This document shows, piece after piece, positions 6,129 to 60,244 of a stretch of 64,000 bases of DNA. Position 1 is the first letter of the stretch, and each line of letters opens with the position of its first letter. Below the pieces are notes generated by a model, which saw nothing but the letters and a program-made list of their open reading frames with translations, did not search any database and was not told the origin of the DNA. Both the position numbers and the translations under genes were made by a program. The stretch spans positions 13,454,001-13,518,000 of the forward strand of contig OZ176050.1 of the NCBI GenBank assembly GCA_964247055.1, given 5' to 3'. This stretch comes from Paragordius varius (Eukaryota; Animalia; Nematomorpha).

Positions 6129-8826
6129 ATGCCTAAAAAATTCAAGAGTAACAATTACGACAAACATCAATTAATTATTATACTTGAGAAGGCATCTTTA
6201 GAGCTGATAAAAGTATATATTTTGAATTATTTATTAGGTAGGTAAAGATAATCAATTACTAAACATCGATAAACATAAAGGTATTGTAAATAAGAAAAAT
6301 CATGATCTTGCGAATTTGAGACCAGACATTGTACACCAAGTAAAAAACATAATATTAATTTTAGTGTTTATTAATGCTTATGGATAGTCCTTTGAATTTA
6401 TCGGGACATTTAAAAGTTTACATACACACTCAATCGAATATTTTGATAGAAATTAATCCACTTACCCGAATTCCCAGAACTTTTGATAGATTTTGTGGAC
6501 TGATGGGTAGTTTATATCGTGATGATTTTTAAAAAATGTGTCTTTAAGTTATCAGTTAGCATATTGTTTTTATTATAATTTAAATTAATTTCATTTGGCA
6601 GCAATTATTTATCCTAATAAAAATAATTTTTCTTGTCGGAATACAAACAGATATTTAAAATAATATTGAAGATGTTTTACAACATATAATAGGGCAACTT
6701 ATAAAGTCATCGTTGCAGTATAAGATTGATAAACCTTATGAATGAATTTTAACTAATCAAAAAACTCCGGTTTTAATTTTTTTAAAGCTTGCTACTATTA
6801 ATATTATATATTGTTTTGAGTTAAAAGTGAATTAAAAATCGTTTTTACATAGTATTACGTAATTTATTAACATGATTTAAGGAAAATTGGATTTTGCATT
6901 CCTAATCACTATTTTAATTGCTAAACACTTAATCACTTTTTCAGATTTGAAAAAAAATTATGATATTGATATATATTTAAAAATATTCATTCATGGCTCT
7001 ATAAGCGCATATTTAAAAAATAATAATATTTTAATGAATGTAAAATAATATCTAATACTTTTTACCACCCAATAATTTATCTGTATTTTATGTTGAATCC
7101 CCAAACTAGCAAAAACATTTGCTGAAAAATAAATTTAATTAATTTTTATTTAAACACCAATTTTTATTTAATGATTTCAAATGTTGTTTGTTCCATCTAT
7201 TATTAATCCAAATTTTACATCGTTGAAGTTCCAATGCAACGAATAAAGCTCATTTATTTGACAGATAATTATATTGTTTTTGATGATTATTTTGGTTTAA
7301 TACCTTATATTAATATTATATTTGCAAATTACTATGGTCAAAAAAACACCTAAATAAATATTATTTGTTTAAATATATTTCAAATGAAATTTTACATAAA
7401 TTAATTAATAAATACTTTTTATTATATACAGTTCGCATTTTAATGGTTGCTTATTTCACACTATAGCTGGACGGCTATTTACAACACGTGTGTGAAAAAA
7501 ACAAAATGTTAATAAACAATTTTTTTTCCTTTTTCCATACACTACTGTTCTTGCGAATCGCCCAACTATAGTGTGTGAAAGAAGCAACCATTAAAATGCA
7601 TACTGTAAAGCTAAAAAATCTCAGTTACAAATTTTATTTAGTTCAACTTTTACAAGATTTATCCATACAATCAGCCCAAAACAATGAAACATTGTTAAAA
7701 ATTATAAAGAATCCAGTTACTAATTACTTACCGCTCGATTTCAAAAAGTTTGGTACCTCATGCAATGCTGCAACAATCCTTAAACAAAATGAATTCGTTG
7801 AATTTGTACAGGGCTCTGATAACGGTTTCGTGTTTGTCATAGGAGCCATGGCCCATGGCTCAGTATTTTACATATGATTTTTTTCATTTTTCAAATTAAG
7901 TTTGGTTATTCAAACTAAATTTGAATTTTTCTATATTTAATTGTTGGTTTTGAATAAAATCAGAATTTTTGTATTCCTTAATGATTAAAGGTTTAAAATG
8001 TTAAACACATAGTCAAACCTCTTGATTCTATACATAATTTTTTAGCTATCTTATTACTTTATTTTGTAAAAAAATATATTTTTGGATACTTTCACGTGCA
8101 TAAATGGTCTGAAAATTGTTTTTTTATTGGAAAAATTTGATAACATGTTGAAAAGGCTTAACTTAGATTAAATCATTATTGTAGCTTTGTTATAAATTTT
8201 TTTCCGTATATTTTTAATTTTATGCTGGTATGGTATGTTGATATTTACTAACTATAAATTTAGCAAAATATATTTTACCGTCCATTGAGGTTTGACTGTT
8301 TAAATCTTAAAGGTATACACATGCTTTATTTTCTTTTATATAACCTTAAAATTTAATTATTCCATTGATTTAATACTTTGTAAATTACAAAATATTATAG
8401 TAAAAATTTAATAGGACAAAACGTAAAAATCTAAAGACATATATTTTTTTCTAAAAGACAACCATACTTTTGAAACCTTAATTTTTCCTCTATAAATTAT
8501 CTAATTACGAATGTAAGATATAAAATTGATTGTGTTAGTAATATATATCTATATTTTACACTTTTCAATATTAAATAATGAGTTATAATAAAAAAAATCA
8601 AGGTATTAAACATATGGTTGCCTTTTAAAAAAAATATTCATCTATATATTTTTACATTTTGTCCGTATAATTTCAATTTTTACTGAAAATAAAAATTATA
8701 TATATGTTTTAGATAAATGTCGATTACACCGAAGATCAGATTAGTATGAGTCAATACCCCCTTTCTGCAGCTCTAACATGCTCCAAAATATGCAACCTAT
8801 TTGAACAAGCTTGGAATATTTTTTGA
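6129..8826 (+). CDS. EMG1: Ribosomal RNA small subunit methyltransferase NEP1/EMG1 (SPOUT family), 5 exons
   Basis: Exons 6129-6212, 6238-6339, 6365-6506, 7642-7862, 8713-8826 join in phase with GT-AG introns. Motifs [61 protein letters not shown] and [12 protein letters not shown] match EMG1. Confidence 0.97.
7429..7605. mobile_element. TA-flanked MITE family M (TIR CAGTATGCATTTTAATGGTTGCTTATTTCACAC), Tc1/mariner-like
   Basis: ~35-bp TIRs with TA on both sides, located in EMG1 intron 3. Other copies at 54093-54290, 55284-55487, 55951-56114 and ~58369-58536. Confidence 0.85.
8398..8685. mobile_element. TA-flanked MITE family T (TIR CAGTAAAAA.TGAAATTATACGGACAAAACGTAAAAA)
   Basis: Inverted termini and shared interior with 21617-21897, 24681-24914, 41246-41493, 52910-53215 and 58207-58875. 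Confidence 0.8.
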
Positions 8827-18075: not shown

Positions 18076-21000
18076 AGGGTTAAGGTATATTAAGTATTAA
18101 AATTGAAATTTTCTACAATTCCAATATAAATATTGCCGAATTTTATGTATTTGTAATATGCTTAAACGCAGACGATATATGAACATATATCGTCAATCAT
18201 CTTTGCCTAAGTTTTTAAAGATATAATTAAAAATACCATAAATGGTTCGGATATTTATCCCTTTTTAATTAATTTAAAATTATTACTGGACTCGCGAAAG
18301 TTTTAACATTCGCCTGCCCGGGCTGACAGTGATGATAGAAAATATACCCAGTTTCACGAACTCTGGTCCAATATACTGCTCATTTTAAAACAATGGGATA
18401 TTAATTTAATTTTCCAAGCACCAAATTATATCCTGTCACATTTTTCCACATGCGATATGACCAAAAAAATACGCATAATTGCAACAACCTAAATTCACAT
18501 TTTCATACTTTTTTTAGCTACTATGTCCCTCCACAATTTGGTTCTACTTTTAATTCTGCCGGCGGTCCTTTCATGCAACACCCTGCCAACATTGGTGGCG
18601 CAGCATTTGGGGCCAGTAAATCCCTTATGAATATCCACGAATATTATGGTAACAATTCAAATACGAACGCTGCTTTCACACCAATAGTTTCGCCTGTCAC
18701 ACCTCAATACCCCCCTCATTATTTGAATGGCATCGGGGGTTTAATCGCCCCCCCAAATGGTTCGCCTTATTCTATGAATAATCATTCTTTACAACATCAA
18801 CAACAACAGCACACTTCTATGCAATATATACCAATTAATAACCTTTCACATCATCGCATATACAATAATTCTAATGCAAATTCCCCTCTCTCTCATACAG
18901 CAGCAATGTACACCAATCATAATAATGTTATTAATGATCGCCATAACACGAGTTTCATGTCAGAAAAACAAGCACATTATATACAAGAAGAAACAGACTC
19001 TAAAGGGAATGTGAGATGTAGGACGACGACTCAAGAACCACGCTTGTCAATTCACAATTATGCGTATCGGAAAGCAGCTTTGAATCATACCAATAATAAT
19101 CAGCTGTCATCAAGGAGTTACAATGATTTACATAACATTCAAAACCAACAAAATGTACATGCTACAAATTATAATAGCCATAATTTTAACAATAAACCAA
19201 ATCCGAATCCTCCCTTGTCTCCTGCATCATTCTCAATGATATCCGCCTCAACACATAAAAGTATTGTGCATGATATTAAAATTAAACTAGAGATAACTTT
19301 GAATTGATTTTAAAAAATTCCAAAGATTTTAAATAGGACAATATAAAAGAGTATCAAATTTGTTTCATAATATACATAAAAAGATTAAAGTTTTCAAGTT
19401 TTATTGTATGACAGTTGAATGATTATAAAATACTACATAATTTTTTGAATGTAAGATTAAAATAGTTTAAAATAAAACAATTTGTTTGATGGTAGAGGGA
19501 AAATTTTAATTTGGTTTAATGAATTTTCCTCTTTATTTATTCATCATAATATTTAAAATTTTGCTCTTTAGAATTTCCCAATCAACACCCTAACTCAAAC
19601 AATTACAATGGACATAATAGTTTACAAAAAGCGACGGATCATCGATCGAATAATGGCAACAATTTTTCACATTTTGCACCAGATGATGGAACTGAATCCA
19701 TTATATCACAACAAACTGAACATGATGTGGTAATATTTTGAAATTTTTAAACTTTGTAAAAAGTTAGATTTTGAAAAAGGATTAATGATTTTATCTCGAA
19801 TATAATATATTATTTACAGTTCAAATTCAACCGTGAACAATTCGAATTCACCTTAAAATATATATAAGATTAAAAATAAGCTATTCTGTTTAAAATTAAA
19901 TGCTAAAAAAATAATAAACTATGTCATAAAGATATATTTCATTTCAATAATGATGATTTATATTAGCCCGATAACTTATTTTTTGGGGGGCAAATTCGAA
20001 TCGTTTAAGGCTGAATTTGAACTGTAAATGGTATATATAAATTTTTTATCATTGTTTCCGCATTTATTGCCGAATCAATTATGATTAATATAACTTTTTT
20101 TACGATTAGTATATATATCTATTTACTGCTTCATCCAAAATTAATATTATTAAGTAATTTTAGAGCTTATAATAACATTTTTAGTTTATTTTCAAGGTTA
20201 CAGCTACACACCTGTGTACGAATTATGTAAATGTTTTTATAACTCTATAAGTATAAAAGAATGAGATTCGTAATTAATTTATTATCAAAATTGTCAAAGT
20301 CATCGTCCACATTATTTACTGTATTTAGTTTTATATAACAATTCACCATTAGAATATTTTTTTTCATTAGAATATATTATTATTATCGATTTATTTTTAG
20401 TTAATGCTTAACCATTGTTTCGATGACATTGAAAATTTTGTGTCAAAGATCCAGCATTCAAGTGCCGCCCTGCGTGAATTGGAAAAACGCAAAGCCATGT
20501 CCAAAAAGAATCCAAAAATTATGGCTGGAAGTATATAATATGCAGCGAAAATTAACCTAATATAAACGAGCTTTCTTAAAAAATTTATTTTTTCGTTCAA
20601 TGGGGGTATAAATATTTGTTAAAGAATGGAAAAAACAAGAGCTCTATGGTAGTATTAACAATATCATAATCATCAAAAAATTATAAGAATTACCATAGAG
20701 CTTTTGTTTTTTCCATTCTTTACTACCAAATATTTATACCCCCATTTAACGAAAAAAATAAATTTTTGATAAAATAAAGGATACATGACTGTAATAAACG
20801 AGCTTACTTAAAAAATTATTATATTAGTTTTTTGATATTTTGTTATAATTGACTATTTAGTTATTTGCTTTAATCAGCTAAAATTATATGAATTTATTGG
20901 GGTGAATTTTCGATTAAGTACTAGTAATCTTTGTCAAACGTAAAAACTAAAATTAAAATATAAACTAAAAATTAAAGTATAAAGTTAAAATATTTTATGA

Positions 21001-24000
21001 TATGTTTGCTAATTGATTAAAAAACTATTTCTGAACCGACTTACTAAAGGGTTTGAATGTGTGAAAGGAAAAACAACCATATTTTACAGTAGCGGGATAA
21101 AATATTTTAACTTTATACTTTAATTTTTAGTTTATATTTTAATTTTATTACTTACGTTTGACAAAGATTACTAGTGGTTATCGATAATTCACCCCAATAA
21201 ATTCATATAATTTTAGCTAAATTACAATTGCACAATAATAACAAAATAGTCAATTATAGCAAATATAAAAAAAAACTAATATAATAATTTTTTAAGTAAG
21301 GTAATAAAACATTTTGATACGAACGAACCATTCTCAAAGCTAATTATAGTTTTATTTTATATGATTCAATTTATATCATTATTTTATATTTATATTATAT
21401 AGGTGGAATGTTAAGTTTACGAGCTAAACCACCGAATGAGGCTGAATTCATTGATATTTTACAGAAATTTAAATTGGCCTTCAATTTGTTGGCCCGACTG
21501 AAGAATTGCATTAGGGACCCGAGTGCCCCTGAATTGGTGCATTTTCTTATTCGCCCGCTTGAAATGATTGTAGTTTACCTTAAAGTAAGCTCTACTACTT
21601 TTTTATGCATTTACAACAGTAAAAAACGGGGAAATATAAAGACAAATATTTTGTTTTAAAAAGACAGGCCCATATTTTTTGTTTGATTTTTTTTAAAGAT
21701 ATAACTAACTCATTGTTTTAAACTACTACAAAGTATAGGATAGAAAGTAAATTAGCACAATCAATTATGTATTTTACTATTGTAATTAAATTATATTTAT
21801 AGGATAAATTAAGGTTTAAAAAAGTATGGTTTTTTTGAAAATAAAAAATGTGTCTTTATATTTTTACATTTTGTCCGTATGATTTCAATTTTTACTGTAA
21901 TAAAATGTTTTTACTCTCTTGGATAATTTATTAAAAGTTTTATTTTGGTTACAAGAAGATTTCGAATAAAATTATTGATTATGGAGAAAAATATGTCAAG
22001 TAGTTATTTTAATTAATATAATTTTAGTGTGATTTATTTTGTTTATAGACCTGGTTTAATTTAAGACTTATTAAGATCATTTTGTATTTTAAAATGGGAT
22101 ATAGTCCTTATAAAAAGCAAATTGTATTTATTTACTAGTGCTTAATCAACAAAATAACCTTTGTTGAAAAATAAAAAATTATCACTTTTTAAGCCACATT
22201 TTTTAGCCAAGTTTTAAAAGTATTTTTGTTTTTATATCTTTACGTTTTGTCCGTATAATTTCACTTTTTACTGTATTATATGTTAAATAAAACCTTAATG
22301 ATAAATAAAAAAATTTATTTTCTTCAATATATTTTTTAAAAATCTTTTATCCAATGTATCATATAGCAACATAACAATGGTTCGAGTGAATTAACACAAC
22401 ACATTGTTACACCCCTGCTTACAACCAAAGCTATTGATTTGCTCAACGAATGTTTAACCAACAAAGAGGTCACTTTCTGGAAAACTTTGGGGGAGGCTTG
22501 GAATTTTGCTCAGTAAAACATAAAACTCTACTTAATAATATAATCTTGCTTGTTTAATTAATATTATTGAATCAAACATTTTTAATGTATACCATTTCCA
22601 ATTCAAATTTACCCTTGAACAATTGAATTTACCCTTGAACAAGTCAAACTCATCCTAAAAATATATTATGAGTTTTCGAGATAATATTACTCATCATTAA
22701 TATGAAATATATTTTTAAGACATAGTTTATTATTTTCTCAGTATAATATTAATTTTAAATAGAATTTTATATTTAAAAAATATTAAAATATAAAGGTAAT
22801 TTTTAATCTTAAAAAACACATAATTTATTTTAGGGTGAATATGAATTGTTCGAGGGTGAATTTGAACTGTAAATGCTATAATTAACTCTCGATTGGTTAC
22901 ACCAACCAAAAAGCTTGATATGTATCTTCATAATCTTTATGGAGTTTTATATATGTAGACAAAAATATTTAATGATATATATATATAATCTAAATTCAAA
23001 TAAACATATAATTTGATTATCAATGCATTTAATAACCTTATACCATAATTTACATATATAACTTTATAAAAAATTCTAAAACTTTTTCATAAAATATAAT
23101 ATGTCATATATAGGGATCATTTTCATGGATATGCTCAAAACTTTTCTCCCGTTTTTAATGATGGTTGGCAAGCCCGATACCAGAGTTCCGAAATCGATAA
23201 AATGAGTGAAATATCGGTTATTTTCCATTTAAATATTTTTACTAATTTCAATATTCATAATTAAAACAAATTCTTGATGTGAAGAGTAAAAAGTTTTGAT
23301 AGGGAGCTAACAATTTTAAATTGATAGATACTGTCACATTTTCATAGAATCGTCATATTTTATATACTTTTTATTATATAGCCTATACTATGTTGTAAGG
23401 CTTGAAAATTTTTATGTAGTTTAGGGTTTTTTACCATATATTACCAACTTACTCGTTTAGCTCATGTTAAAAAATTAAGATAAGTTAGTATGGTTGATTT
23501 TATAAAATAATTGACAACTTTCAATTTAACCTTGTTAATTTAAAAAAATTTATATTTTGCTCTATAAATGTTTTCACTAAGACTAAGTAATGGTAATAAT
23601 TTTTTTATTTCCCTTGAAAAACTTTACTACATAAGACAAAACATCATTTAATGTTAAGGTATAAAAAAAATCTGTAATTTTCTTTATAGAATGGACTTAT
23701 TCGACCATCAAGTGGTCGACTACCTCACCATACTACTAATGGTCAAAAAAGCCCAAGTTTAACCAACAATTCAAACAGTCAAAGGCAGCTGCTTAGATCT
23801 TCTCCGGCCTCCCCATTGAGTATGGAACAGGATAGTGGGTATAAATTTATACCGCATTATTTATGATAGGAGTTTTAATTTTATGATTTTTATTAGGCTT
23901 AATTTATGAAAACTATGCGATAGTTTATCAAAAAATATTTGGTGAATATGGCAGAAATTGTTTAATTTTTAATTTCTTTCAAACAAATTCAATTGTTTTA

Positions 24001-25726
24001 CGTACTATGCTGGAATCTTGATTTACATACCATATTACTTTTTTTGTCCATAATCCAAAATTTTTAATCATTTAACTCTAATACTTAAACACGATAAAGT
24101 TGTAATTCGAAATTCTGCAATATAATTAAAATATGCTAAACACTATTTAACTAATGATTATTATGTAATAAAAGCTTTATCACATCATCCAATCAAACTT
24201 CAAACAATAACAACACTGAAACAAAAAATCATTTTAACATCAACAATAATAATGGGCCAGCTTATCAAACTGTAAACAAGACGCGTTCACCCTTACCCCC
24301 TATACCTACCTCTAATGCTAATTCTAATTCTACAACATCAAAATTAACAAAACCATTCAATAATAAATTTGTTGAAAAATGTGATTTTCAACGTACCACC
24401 GATGATAAAAGCAATGATGAAAGCAATTTAAGTAGCAATACCAACAGTTTTTATTACCATAACAATGATGGAAACGGGGCTTACAGTGATATACAGTAAA
24501 AATTTTGAATTATAAAGTTTAAGACATATGTATTACGTCTACAGAGAGACAGTTATATTTTTTGAGAAACTTGTTGATTTAATCTCTAGATAGGATATAA
24601 TATTATCTATTACCAATTTTTATCTCTTTCACTACTTTTGCAATGGATATAGTAAAAATGATGATGGGTACAGGGATATACAGTAAAAGTTTAAATTATA
24701 TAGTTACAAAACTTACTTAAAAAAGACAAATTTTTAAATTATATATTTAATCCTTAATTTTAAATACCCTTTCATGATATGTATGTTACCATTAACATCT
24801 CTTTCCCTTAATTTGTAACCCAAAAAAGTAAGTTATAAATGAAATTTAAGGTTTAAAATATATGGTTGTTTGTGTTTTAATTTTTACGTTTTGTTATAAT
24901 TTCTCTTTTAACTGTAAGATCTACACCACCAGTTCCTAATCAAAATGCTGGCGGACAACACTTTATGAGGAGGAATGTGTTGGATCAAAAAGCCGAATTT
25001 TGTGAATACTTGAGAGAAACACGAAGCAAAGCCTATGAGGTTATGTTTGATCGTGAAAGCAAAAATCCCAAGGAATTAACTGTTTCCAAGGGGGAAATTT
25101 TACAGGTAATACATATTTTAAAGCATTCTAATATCACATTAAAGTTTACATGATATTATGTTCATAAAAATCTATGTTTTGCTTTTTTCTGTTAACAAAG
25201 TAATTTAAAGCATTATTAAACTGGAAATTTTGATATTAATGTATAAACATTTAAGGAGGAATTACTTTGAGATTATAGCACAAGTTTTGACATGCCAAGT
25301 GTAATATAATCATTAAAATAAAGTTAGATCACTGAAACATTTAGAGTTGATAAAAAAAGTCACAAAAATTGAAATTTTACAGGCAAATTGTAAAATAACG
25401 ACAATTTTTTTTTCAAAACACTTATTTTAAACCTTGATTATTTTTAAATATATAATTGAGTCTTTACCAATTTACATTTATATTAAAACAAAACGATAAT
25501 TCATATTTAATAAAAATAAGATTTAAAAAACGCGGTTTTCTTTTGGAAAAAAATAAGGTTTGTCGTTATACTTTTACACTTTGTTTATATAATTTTCATT
25601 TTTTATTCTTTATCTCCCCAGATACTTGATGATAACCGTAATTGGTGGAAAGCAAGGAATTACTTGAATGAGATTGGATATGTCCCATATACTATTCTTC
25701 GACCATATTCCTTTTTTGATTCATAA
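12439..25726 (+). CDS. EPS8: EPS8-family (arouser-like) adaptor: PTB, central conserved region, SH3; 14 exons
   Basis: Exons 12439-12487, 12520-12647, 12711-12887, 17807-17874, 18518-19260, 19572-19729, 20401-20530, 21403-21584, 22367-22512, 23114-23216, 23690-23838, 24175-24495, 24919-25105, 25622-25726 splice in frame. PTB: HLATF..GIWTQRM..YNNILMF..IHLFQC. Central: [42 protein letters not shown]3: [32 protein letters not shown]. Confidence 0.93.
15451..15712. mobile_element. Subfamily A copy
   Basis: cata|ccatttacaatgc ... aactgtaaatgg|tata. Confidence 0.85.
16899..17002. repeat. (TA)n microsatellites
   Basis: Two TA runs here; others at ~691-717, ~18050-18075 and ~55505-55545. Confidence 0.95.
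19811..20031. mobile_element. Subfamily A copy
   Basis: tatttacagttcaaattc ... gaactgtaaatgg|tata. Confidence 0.8.
20577..20767. repeat. Fold-back (about 78-bp arms) in EPS8 intron 7
   Basis: ttttttcgttcaatgggggtataaatatttg..agctctatggta is mirrored by taccatagagct..caaatatttataccccatttaacgaaaaaa. Confidence 0.9.
20803..21300. repeat. Fold-back (about 200-bp arms) in EPS8 intron 7
   Basis: cttacttaaaaaattattatattag..tattggggtgaatt..ctagtaatctttgtcaaacgtaa..aaagttaaaatatttt is mirrored at 21087-21300. Confidence 0.9.
21617..21897. mobile_element. MITE family T copy (EPS8 intron 8)
   Basis: cagtaaaaaacggggaaatataaagac ... ttttgtccgtatgatttcaatttttactg|ta; another right end at ~22272. Confidence 0.75.
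22592..22876. mobile_element. Subfamily A copy
   Basis: tata|ccatttccaattcaaatttacccttgaac ... gaactgtaaatgc|tata. Confidence 0.85.
24494..24914. mobile_element. MITE family T, partly duplicated, spanning an EPS8 intron
   Basis: ta|cagtaaaa at 24494 and 24681; right end tttttacgttttgttataatttctcttttaactg|ta at 24914; aaggtttaaaatatatggttg is shared with copy 8398-8685. Confidence 0.75.
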
Positions 25727-41245: not shown

Positions 41246-41493
41246 CATTAAAAGTTAAAATTATACAGACAAAACGTATAACTTAAAGAGAATATTGTTT
41301 AATAAGCCTTCTCAAAACTTTAAATGGTTTAACACATAAACAACAAGGACAACCATAGGGAATGTAACTAATTTACATTACTCTGAATCCACGATAGATT
41401 GAAAAAATTAAGGTTTAAGTATGGTTATCTTTTGTGAAAGCCAGATTTGTCTTATAATTTTACGTTTTGTTTTTATAAAATTAATGTTTACTG
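41246..41493. mobile_element. MITE family T copy
   Basis: aaaattatacagacaaaacgta ... tacgttttgtttttataaaattaatgtttactg|ta. Confidence 0.7.

Positions 41494-48575: not shown

Positions 48576-60244
<11,669 letters not shown>

Follow-up and report, generated by a model that had tools for sequence, protein, structure and literature searches.

The origin of new introns in animals has been an open question for a long time, and the EPS8 locus described here provides a case in which the gain of an intron can be put to the test. In the 64-kb window, that is, the whole stretch of DNA that was analysed, two coding exons of an EPS8-family gene are separated by a predicted intron whose edges coincide with the termini of a MITE family, here called family T. 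The initial annotation had attributed this intron to the insertion of a single such element. The question is whether a MITE entered a continuous coding exon and has since been spliced out of the transcript as an intron.

The EPS8-like gene and its predicted intron

The window is very AT-rich, with ~26% GC; the published genome of Gordionus montsenyensis has 26.9% GC and 64% repeats, with DNA transposons predominating (bioRxiv 10.1101/2023.06.26.546503). The gene was assigned to the EPS8 family based on an EPS8 spectrin-like domain followed by an SH3 domain, both encoded on the + strand. Three exons matched Pfam PF22975 (EPS8_2nd) with E-values of 7.8e-10, 2.8e-19 and 8.9e-13, and one downstream exon matched SH3_1 with an E-value of 2.5e-4, just under the curated cut-off. 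All EPS8 exons seen were intact. Exon 1 of the pair considered here (Table 1) is flanked by exons matching EPS8_2nd (the match at 2.8e-19) and SH3. It is preceded by an acceptor AG at 24173–24174, and its frame runs for 113 codons without a stop in a genome of 26% GC, the stop of the open reading frame being the TAA at 24497–24499. Since this exon is of low complexity and no homologues were detectable by word search, its boundary is a prediction from the reading frames alone.

Table 1. Coordinates of the features of the EPS8 locus, numbered from the first letter of the window
Feature	Position	Strand	Basis
EPS8-like exon 1 (321-nt low-complexity linker, EPS8 spectrin-like domain to SH3)	24175–24495	+	ends GAT ATA CA
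TA beside the first family-T terminus (target-site TA as copied at the end of the exon)	24492–24493	+	read directly
I1, partial family-T 5′ end; bases 3–4 (24496–24497) are the predicted donor GT	24494–24643	+	gapped PWM, motif order
Predicted GT-AG intron, 423 nt, phase 2	24496–24918	+	reading frames of both exons
Candidate in-frame micro-exon, 30 nt	24653–24682	+	AG 24651–24652, GT 24683–24684; stop-free in phase
Echo of the last ~30 nt of the exon (AATGATGATGGGTACAGGGATA + TA), just before the complete MITE	24654–24680 (~27 nt)	+	repeat D4
5′ TA target-site duplication of I2	24679–24680	+	read directly
I2, complete 234-nt family-T MITE	24681–24914	+	PWM, blastn, nhmmer, TIR pairing
3′ TA target-site duplication of I2	24915–24916	+	read directly
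Host AG, predicted acceptor, directly after the target-site duplication	24917–24918	+	read directly
EPS8-like exon 2 (start of SH3 region)	24919–25105	+	ORF; following exon matches Pfam SH3_1

The letters initially given for the two intron edges (TA, TIR and GT donor on the 5′ side; TIR, TA and AG on the 3′ side) were confirmed letter by letter. The end of exon 1 reads GATA-TA-CA/GTAAAAA (GAT A-TA-CA/GTAAAAATT, its TA being at 24492–24493), where the slash marks the predicted splice site. The first family-T terminus begins with CAGTAAAAATT at 24494 and has its GT at 24496–24497. At the 3′ end of the intron, TTTTAACTG extends up to 24914 (CTG at 24912–24914) and is followed by TA, AG and then the ATCT of exon 2. 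Among the AGs in 24881–24930, only the one at 24917–24918 keeps the SH3 frame, and no other in-phase donor/acceptor pair for this intron was seen on inspection by eye. A candidate branch point, TTTTTAC, lies in the 3′ TIR ~32 nt upstream of the AG, together with a T-rich tract. With an A at position −3, the acceptor is a weak splice site; an AAG acceptor was also found at another site of the gene (24174).

Splicing at these sites is predicted to yield GAT ATA CAA TCT, and the empty-site join reads GAT ATA AGA TCT, both as originally described. The latter is free of stops over 190 codons across the joint (112 + 78). That removal of the element restores the reading frame is automatic from the 2-nt shift between element and intron and provides no independent evidence. 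An ancestral intron of only 22 nt (GT 24496 to AG 24517) was considered as well; its reading stops after 25 codons and it found no support.

Family T

Within the 64 kb, at least 12 copies or fragments of family T were identified by blastn and with a profile built from five copies. The elements measure 234–308 nt, have no coding capacity and occur in many copies. Their TIRs are at least 45 nt long and start with CAGTAAAAATTGAAATTATACGGACAAAACGTAA, and both ends read alike outward. As the sequence CA/GTAAAA is read outward at both ends, either insertion orientation offers a donor, in agreement with the initial annotation; GT was present at bases 3–4 in 8/9 reference ends. TA was found on both sides of three copies (24681–24914, 41246–41493 and 58207–58875) and on the readable side of the copies at 21897 and 22273. 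Other flanks were seen on one side of the copy at 52910–53215 (CA) and at the copy ending at 8685 (AA), which may be mutated sites. The CAGT start agrees with the ends of Tc1-like elements. Judged by its copies, TIRs and mostly TA flanks, family T is a real and abundant TA-targeting Tc1-like MITE (Tc1/mariner-type, Stowaway-like), and this part of the earlier proposal is supported in silico.

The summed contig depth in two DNA runs was 10^5–10^6 over other family-T copies compared to 10^2–10^3 for unique sequence, which indicates that the family is very abundant. Being so abundant, its ends must sometimes fall near splice sites by chance. The copies in the window are mostly intronic or intergenic and mostly not at exon edges. 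One copy, at 25362–25609, is contained in a clearly longer intron, its end lying ~12 nt from the acceptor that follows. A second example of the donor geometry had been put forward at 58198–58875, where a family-T terminus indeed gives the donor (58875) of a NAK-like kinase gene; the empty site there, however, is out of frame. Empty-site joins were also made at six other family-T copies, and none of them gave a reading with good support on each side of the joint. At 58207–58875, the longest such reading comprised 118 codons, with only 19 on one side, and was not in the kinase frame.

Composite structure of the intron

The interval 24494–24914 had been described as one element. Contrary to this, its 3′ TIR pairs with the terminus at 24681, which has a TA of its own, and the end of the exon is repeated in between, so that a single element spanning the interval was rejected. 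From its sequence, the interval is instead a composite of three parts. Three family-T ends were located inside the intron, two 5′ and one 3′. Among 127,954 positions scored with the gapped PWM for family-T ends, 24494 ranked 21st, 24681 ranked 11th and 24914 ranked 25th. The anatomy of the interval and the family membership of these three termini were established at this level of analysis.

The first part, I1, contains the family motifs in family order over ~75 nt; beyond this, the similarity is not above chance. The third part, I2, is a complete MITE. It matched the copy at 58205–58288 (blastn E 1e-8), and its segment 24811–24912 matched the family-T profile (nhmmer E 2.4e-4). Its divergence from the family consensus is ~16–20%. 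Over their 22-nt arms (24679–24700 and 24895–24916), the TIRs of I2 show 77% complementarity, and they form a pair in the MFE fold as well as in the centroid fold. The RNA fold of the intron as a whole is unremarkable (z = −0.95). Nothing but TA and AG stands between the 3′ TIR of I2 and exon 2.

The second part, located directly upstream of I2, repeats the end of exon 1. In repeat D4, positions 24669–24692 are identical to 24482–24505 at 22/24 positions, at a spacing of 187 nt. Immediately before the 5′ TA of I2, 9/10 flank bases are the same as at the real exon end, and the similarity extends ~35 nt into the exon (AATGATG...GGG...TACAG.GATA). This junction echo scored 19 at best, the mean of the null being 9.6. 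The other family-T copies have flanks unrelated to the echo, which shows that the echoed flank does not belong to the element. The other donors of the EPS8 gene showed no comparable echo of their exon ends, the donor at 25105 giving a weaker 13-nt match.

The lengths of the parts add up: the 423 nt of the present intron equal the 236 nt of a MITE-made intron (the MITE shifted by 2) plus the 187 nt of a tandem copy of the junction. In their interiors, I1 and I2 resemble each other no better than random window segments do (44/492 reach the same likeness) or than family members do. The 187-nt duplication can therefore be considered secure only around the junction, over ~35–60 nt. Two independent insertions at one site were also considered and rejected, as the second 5′ TIR is preceded by a copy of the exon flank and not by a 3′ TIR.

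Alleles and database searches

Six sequencing runs contained the stretch, all of them as DNA contigs; in the runs presumed to be RNA, word matching found ~0 of its sequence words. Two of these runs were identical to the window. A second sample with the same species label, represented by two contig runs, carried an allele ~10% diverged with the same structure over 24434–24771. Past 24771, the contigs of this allele continue for 129–280 nt unlike the window. Over the part seen in both, the intron appears to be common to the two samples and not polymorphic.

For the protein and relative searches, the EPS8 exons were queried one by one. A word search with exon 1 for protein fragments crossing the junction found nothing, and a HMMER search with exon 2 against 1.8 billion proteins returned just three spurious repeat proteins. 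The metagenome contigs scanned contained 0 exact matches to either the empty-site or the spliced junction, and a metagenome scan for relatives of exon 2 gave none. Altogether, the word search, HMMER and the two metagenome scans yielded no intron-free allele, cDNA or relative.

Probable insertion into a continuous exon

As the exon-end echo directly precedes its 5′ TA, the MITE would once have abutted coding sequence on the 5′ side. Abutting the exon-end copy at one end and exon 2 at the other, it is best read as having been inserted into a continuous exon, and the copy of the exon end beside it may be taken as internal evidence for its landing in coding sequence. From this anatomy we infer that the MITE entered an exon, that the events followed the order given below and that splicing takes place. 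Our favoured explanation, which we consider probable on the sequence evidence, is that a MITE was inserted in a formerly continuous EPS8 exon and became spliced as an intron, and that the junction was later duplicated.

In this scheme, the exon before insertion would have been uninterrupted, with a sequence like ...GATATAAGATCT..., and a family-T MITE would have entered it at a TA (...GAT A-TA-AG ATC T...). The transcript would have stayed usable, the element being removable as a GT-AG intron. Its donor would be the GT at TIR bases 3–4 and its acceptor the host AG right after the duplicated TA, with the T-rich 3′ TIR providing the branch-point-like TTTTTAC and a pyrimidine tract. In the spliced product, two element bases would replace two host bases (R to Q) and the frame would be kept. 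A tandem duplication of ~187 nt would later have copied the junction, namely ~30 nt from the end of the exon and the 5′ part of the MITE, so that the present intron would begin at the TIR of the upstream copy and enclose the exon-end echo (236 + 187 = 423 nt). Of the introner geometry first proposed, the succession of complete MITE, TA and acceptor AG holds in silico, but the element is composite, comprising a 236-nt MITE intron and a 187-nt duplication.

The 190-codon join is the only well-supported one among the 7 family-T copies, although it is partly implied by the geometry itself. When neutral change of 15–20% was simulated, the 169 flanking codons stayed stop-free in only 0.5–1.6% of trials, which indicates that the gene was kept under selection with the element inside. 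Selection on the gene with the element in place would in turn require removal of the element at the RNA level.

Alternative explanations

The present intron could comprise two introns separated by a micro-exon, intron A at 24496–24652 (157 nt) and intron B at 24683–24918 (236 nt), with the echo spliced in either always or alternatively. This would be a variant of the main explanation rather than its opposite: intron A would be the product of the junction duplication and intron B a pure MITE intron. The AG upstream of the candidate micro-exon follows a T/C-rich tract, and the echo is followed by the same CA/GTAAAA donor as the real exon. The 30 nt are in phase and open, and their length difference relative to the real exon end is 6 nt, a multiple of 3. 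Between the two copies the junction is 92% conserved, compared to ~64% elsewhere, as if both donors had been kept. However, ten open codons are expected by chance with a probability of ~40% at such base composition, a length difference divisible by 3 has a 1 in 3 chance, and gene conversion with the real exon could equally have kept the junction alike. We regard the micro-exon as possible but rather doubtful.

It is unlikely that an older intron was here first and that the MITE landed inside it, its coincidence with the intron edges being due to chance or later deletions. The density of family T (at least 12 copies in 64 kb, mostly in introns or between genes) is in keeping with such a history, as are two of its copies: the one at 25362–25609, which lies close to an acceptor without making an intron, and the one at 58198–58875, where the donor-at-TIR geometry is seen without a simple exon insertion, the empty site being out of frame. 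Yet no non-MITE intron sequence is left at the EPS8 locus, with TA and AG alone between TIR and exon 2, and the 5′ TIR is preceded by a TA and the copy of the exon end. A deletion reaching exactly to both element ends would be needed.

Less likely still is an exonic MITE that was removed, now or at first, by spliceosome-independent 'SOS splicing' dependent on TIR pairing, or by a hybrid of this process and the spliceosome, which would make the GT-AG geometry secondary. SOS splicing, which TIR pairing triggers, acts on Tc1 in C. elegans and, in human cells, on mariner elements (Zhao et al. 2025, PMC12779559). Exonic Tc1, Tc3 and Tc4 are excised from mRNA in or near their ITRs, for which ITR pairing is needed, and rescue of function is known for poorly conserved regions (PMC12779559). 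The insertion studied here sits in a low-complexity linker, and the predicted fold brings the two TIRs of I2 together as a pair. On the other hand, the known SOS junctions are heterogeneous, partly in frame and rarely GU-AG (PMC12779559), whereas a clean in-frame GT-AG pair is found here exactly at the element edges, which points to the spliceosome. Furthermore, the TIRs are now just 77% complementary over 22 nt, the fold of the whole intron does not stand out (z = −0.95) and the upstream copy of the donor lies 187 nt outside the hairpin.

It is highly improbable that the gene is dead or has been modelled wrongly, with the MITE interrupting a decaying exon and no splicing, for although no transcript or protein of the gene was found in the databases searched, all its exons seen are intact, and 169 flanking codons would remain stop-free without selection with a probability of only 0.5–1.6%.

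Comparison with known systems

The preferred reading, a MITE inserted into a continuous exon and spliced from it, shares its geometry with the introners derived from DNA transposons, which carry a single splice site and co-opt the second one at the TSD (PMC11282704, PMC9860276). In a survey of 3,325 genomes, introners were found in two animal groups only (Gozashti et al. 2022, PMC9860276). The EPS8 element is like those of Micromonas pusilla and Aureococcus in being a short non-autonomous TIR element with a TSD, with one splice site inside and one co-opted, and in its insertion into coding sequence leaving a frame-preserving intron, here in silico only. It differs in being an animal Tc1-like, TA-targeting MITE whose copies are mostly intronic or intergenic, and not a specialised introner. 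Of the near-identical intron copies in many genes that mark introners, none was seen for family T in the window, where one further copy supplies a donor (58875), with its empty site out of frame.

Introns made from MITEs within genes are also known from another animal, Fritillaria borealis. According to the account of Henriet et al. 2019 given in PMC11282704, these introns are species-specific, mostly AG-AC or AG-AT, and need an altered spliceosome. The EPS8 intron, as predicted, differs from them in being canonical GT-AG.

Gain or growth of introns by tandem duplication of a segment bearing a splice site has reportedly been proposed by Rogers in 1989 and described by Hellsten et al. in 2011. 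The EPS8 intron is similar in that the exon end and donor are copied within it, and intron A would be a duplication-made intron if the echo were spliced in. It differs in that its donor is derived from a transposon and in that the predicted intron extends beyond the second copy, as far as the distal end of the MITE.

Removal of Tc1-type elements from C. elegans mRNAs is said to have been reported by Rushforth and Anderson in 1996. Nematomorpha and nematodes are regarded as sister phyla. The EPS8 MITE shares with Tc1, Tc3 and Tc4 the TA target and the CAGT termini and, on the preferred reading, an exonic position in a poorly conserved protein region of an ecdysozoan worm, where it would be tolerated through its removal from the RNA in or near the inverted repeats. 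The C. elegans insertions are young, having arisen in the laboratory or in strains, and their junctions are heterogeneous and mostly non-GU-AG, whereas the EPS8 MITE is old and probably fixed, with one clean predicted GT-AG pair. In biological terms, the nearest precedent for the EPS8 MITE is this removal of Tc1 from nematode exons at the RNA level. Zhao et al. speculate that spliceosomal sites are present in the Tc1 ITRs (PMC12779559, Extended Data Fig. 9 legend).

More tentatively, and with less confidence than in the insertion itself, family T might act as a functioning introner in an animal phylum, probably the Nematomorpha, with termini that double as splice signals, many introns created genome-wide and copies of the exon-edge/MITE-terminus junction inflating those introns. 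If so, the junction copies would be a by-product of transposition or repair, and a single genome would document how introns are born as well as how they grow. Introner-like intron gain is a known kind of event, to which a nematomorph case would add a new member, and the EPS8 locus would connect introners with the way in which nematodes are known to remove Tc1-type elements at the RNA level.

Family-T elements in the kinase gene and the following EPS8 intron

The NAK-like kinase gene carries an intron occupied by a composite of family T, the abundant TA-flanked Tc1-like MITE, and the PIIHRDLK motif follows directly after this intron. Between the two element termini lies ~480 nt of non-family sequence. 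The donor corresponds to bases 3-4 of the terminal inverted repeat (TIR), read as TA CC|GTAAAAA, and the acceptor (AAAATAG|) lies 7 nt beyond the TA at the opposite end of the element. When the empty-site join was constructed by removing the element and one TA in silico, the result was out of the kinase frame. Therefore, the composite is not a simple exon insertion.

For the family-T copy in the EPS8 intron after the main one, the degraded 3' end stops ~12 nt short of the acceptor, and the 5' TIR contains an exact 13-nt match, GAAATTTTACAGG, to the end and donor of the preceding exon at 25094-25106. This match could be due to chance, to an echo (a copy of the exon end inside the intron) or to gene conversion.

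Features of the family-T elements and the EPS8 locus (positions within the window)
Feature	Positions	Strand	Location
Composite family-T element (termini 58207 and 58875)	58198-58875	minus	Intron of NAK-like kinase gene
Further family-T copy	25362-25609		Following EPS8 intron (25106-25621)
Third likeness to the exon-end/TIR junction, GGATATA-GTAAAAATGATGA	24645-24664		Repeat family D3, main EPS8 intron
Repeat distinct from family T	22636-22969		EPS8 intron
300-codon open frame, N/Q/P/H-rich	18405-19304	+	Upstream of EPS8 exons

Other features of the EPS8 locus

In the main EPS8 intron, the D3 repeat resembled the exon-end/TIR junction with 83% identity over 18 nt, the CA being missing. It may be an additional short echo, with 31-nt spacing, or a chance likeness in AT-rich sequence.

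The DNA contigs of a second sample with the same species label (X4 and X5) were ~10% different from the window at 24434-24771, and their match to it ended at 24771. Among the differences listed, almost none lay in the end of the exon or the initial ~50 bases of the intron, with more found deeper in. Possible explanations are a haplotype that has diverged strongly, a cryptic species, and a difference in structure within the MITE.

The open frame upstream of the EPS8 exons gave no matches when searched against Pfam, and could be an N-terminal low-complexity EPS8 exon or a separate gene.

Within the examined stretch, contig depth peaked at the repeat distinct from family T, reaching 2.7 million in X4, and numerous inversion and back-joint contigs were observed there. 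This repeat probably represents a further MITE or foldback element of very high abundance.
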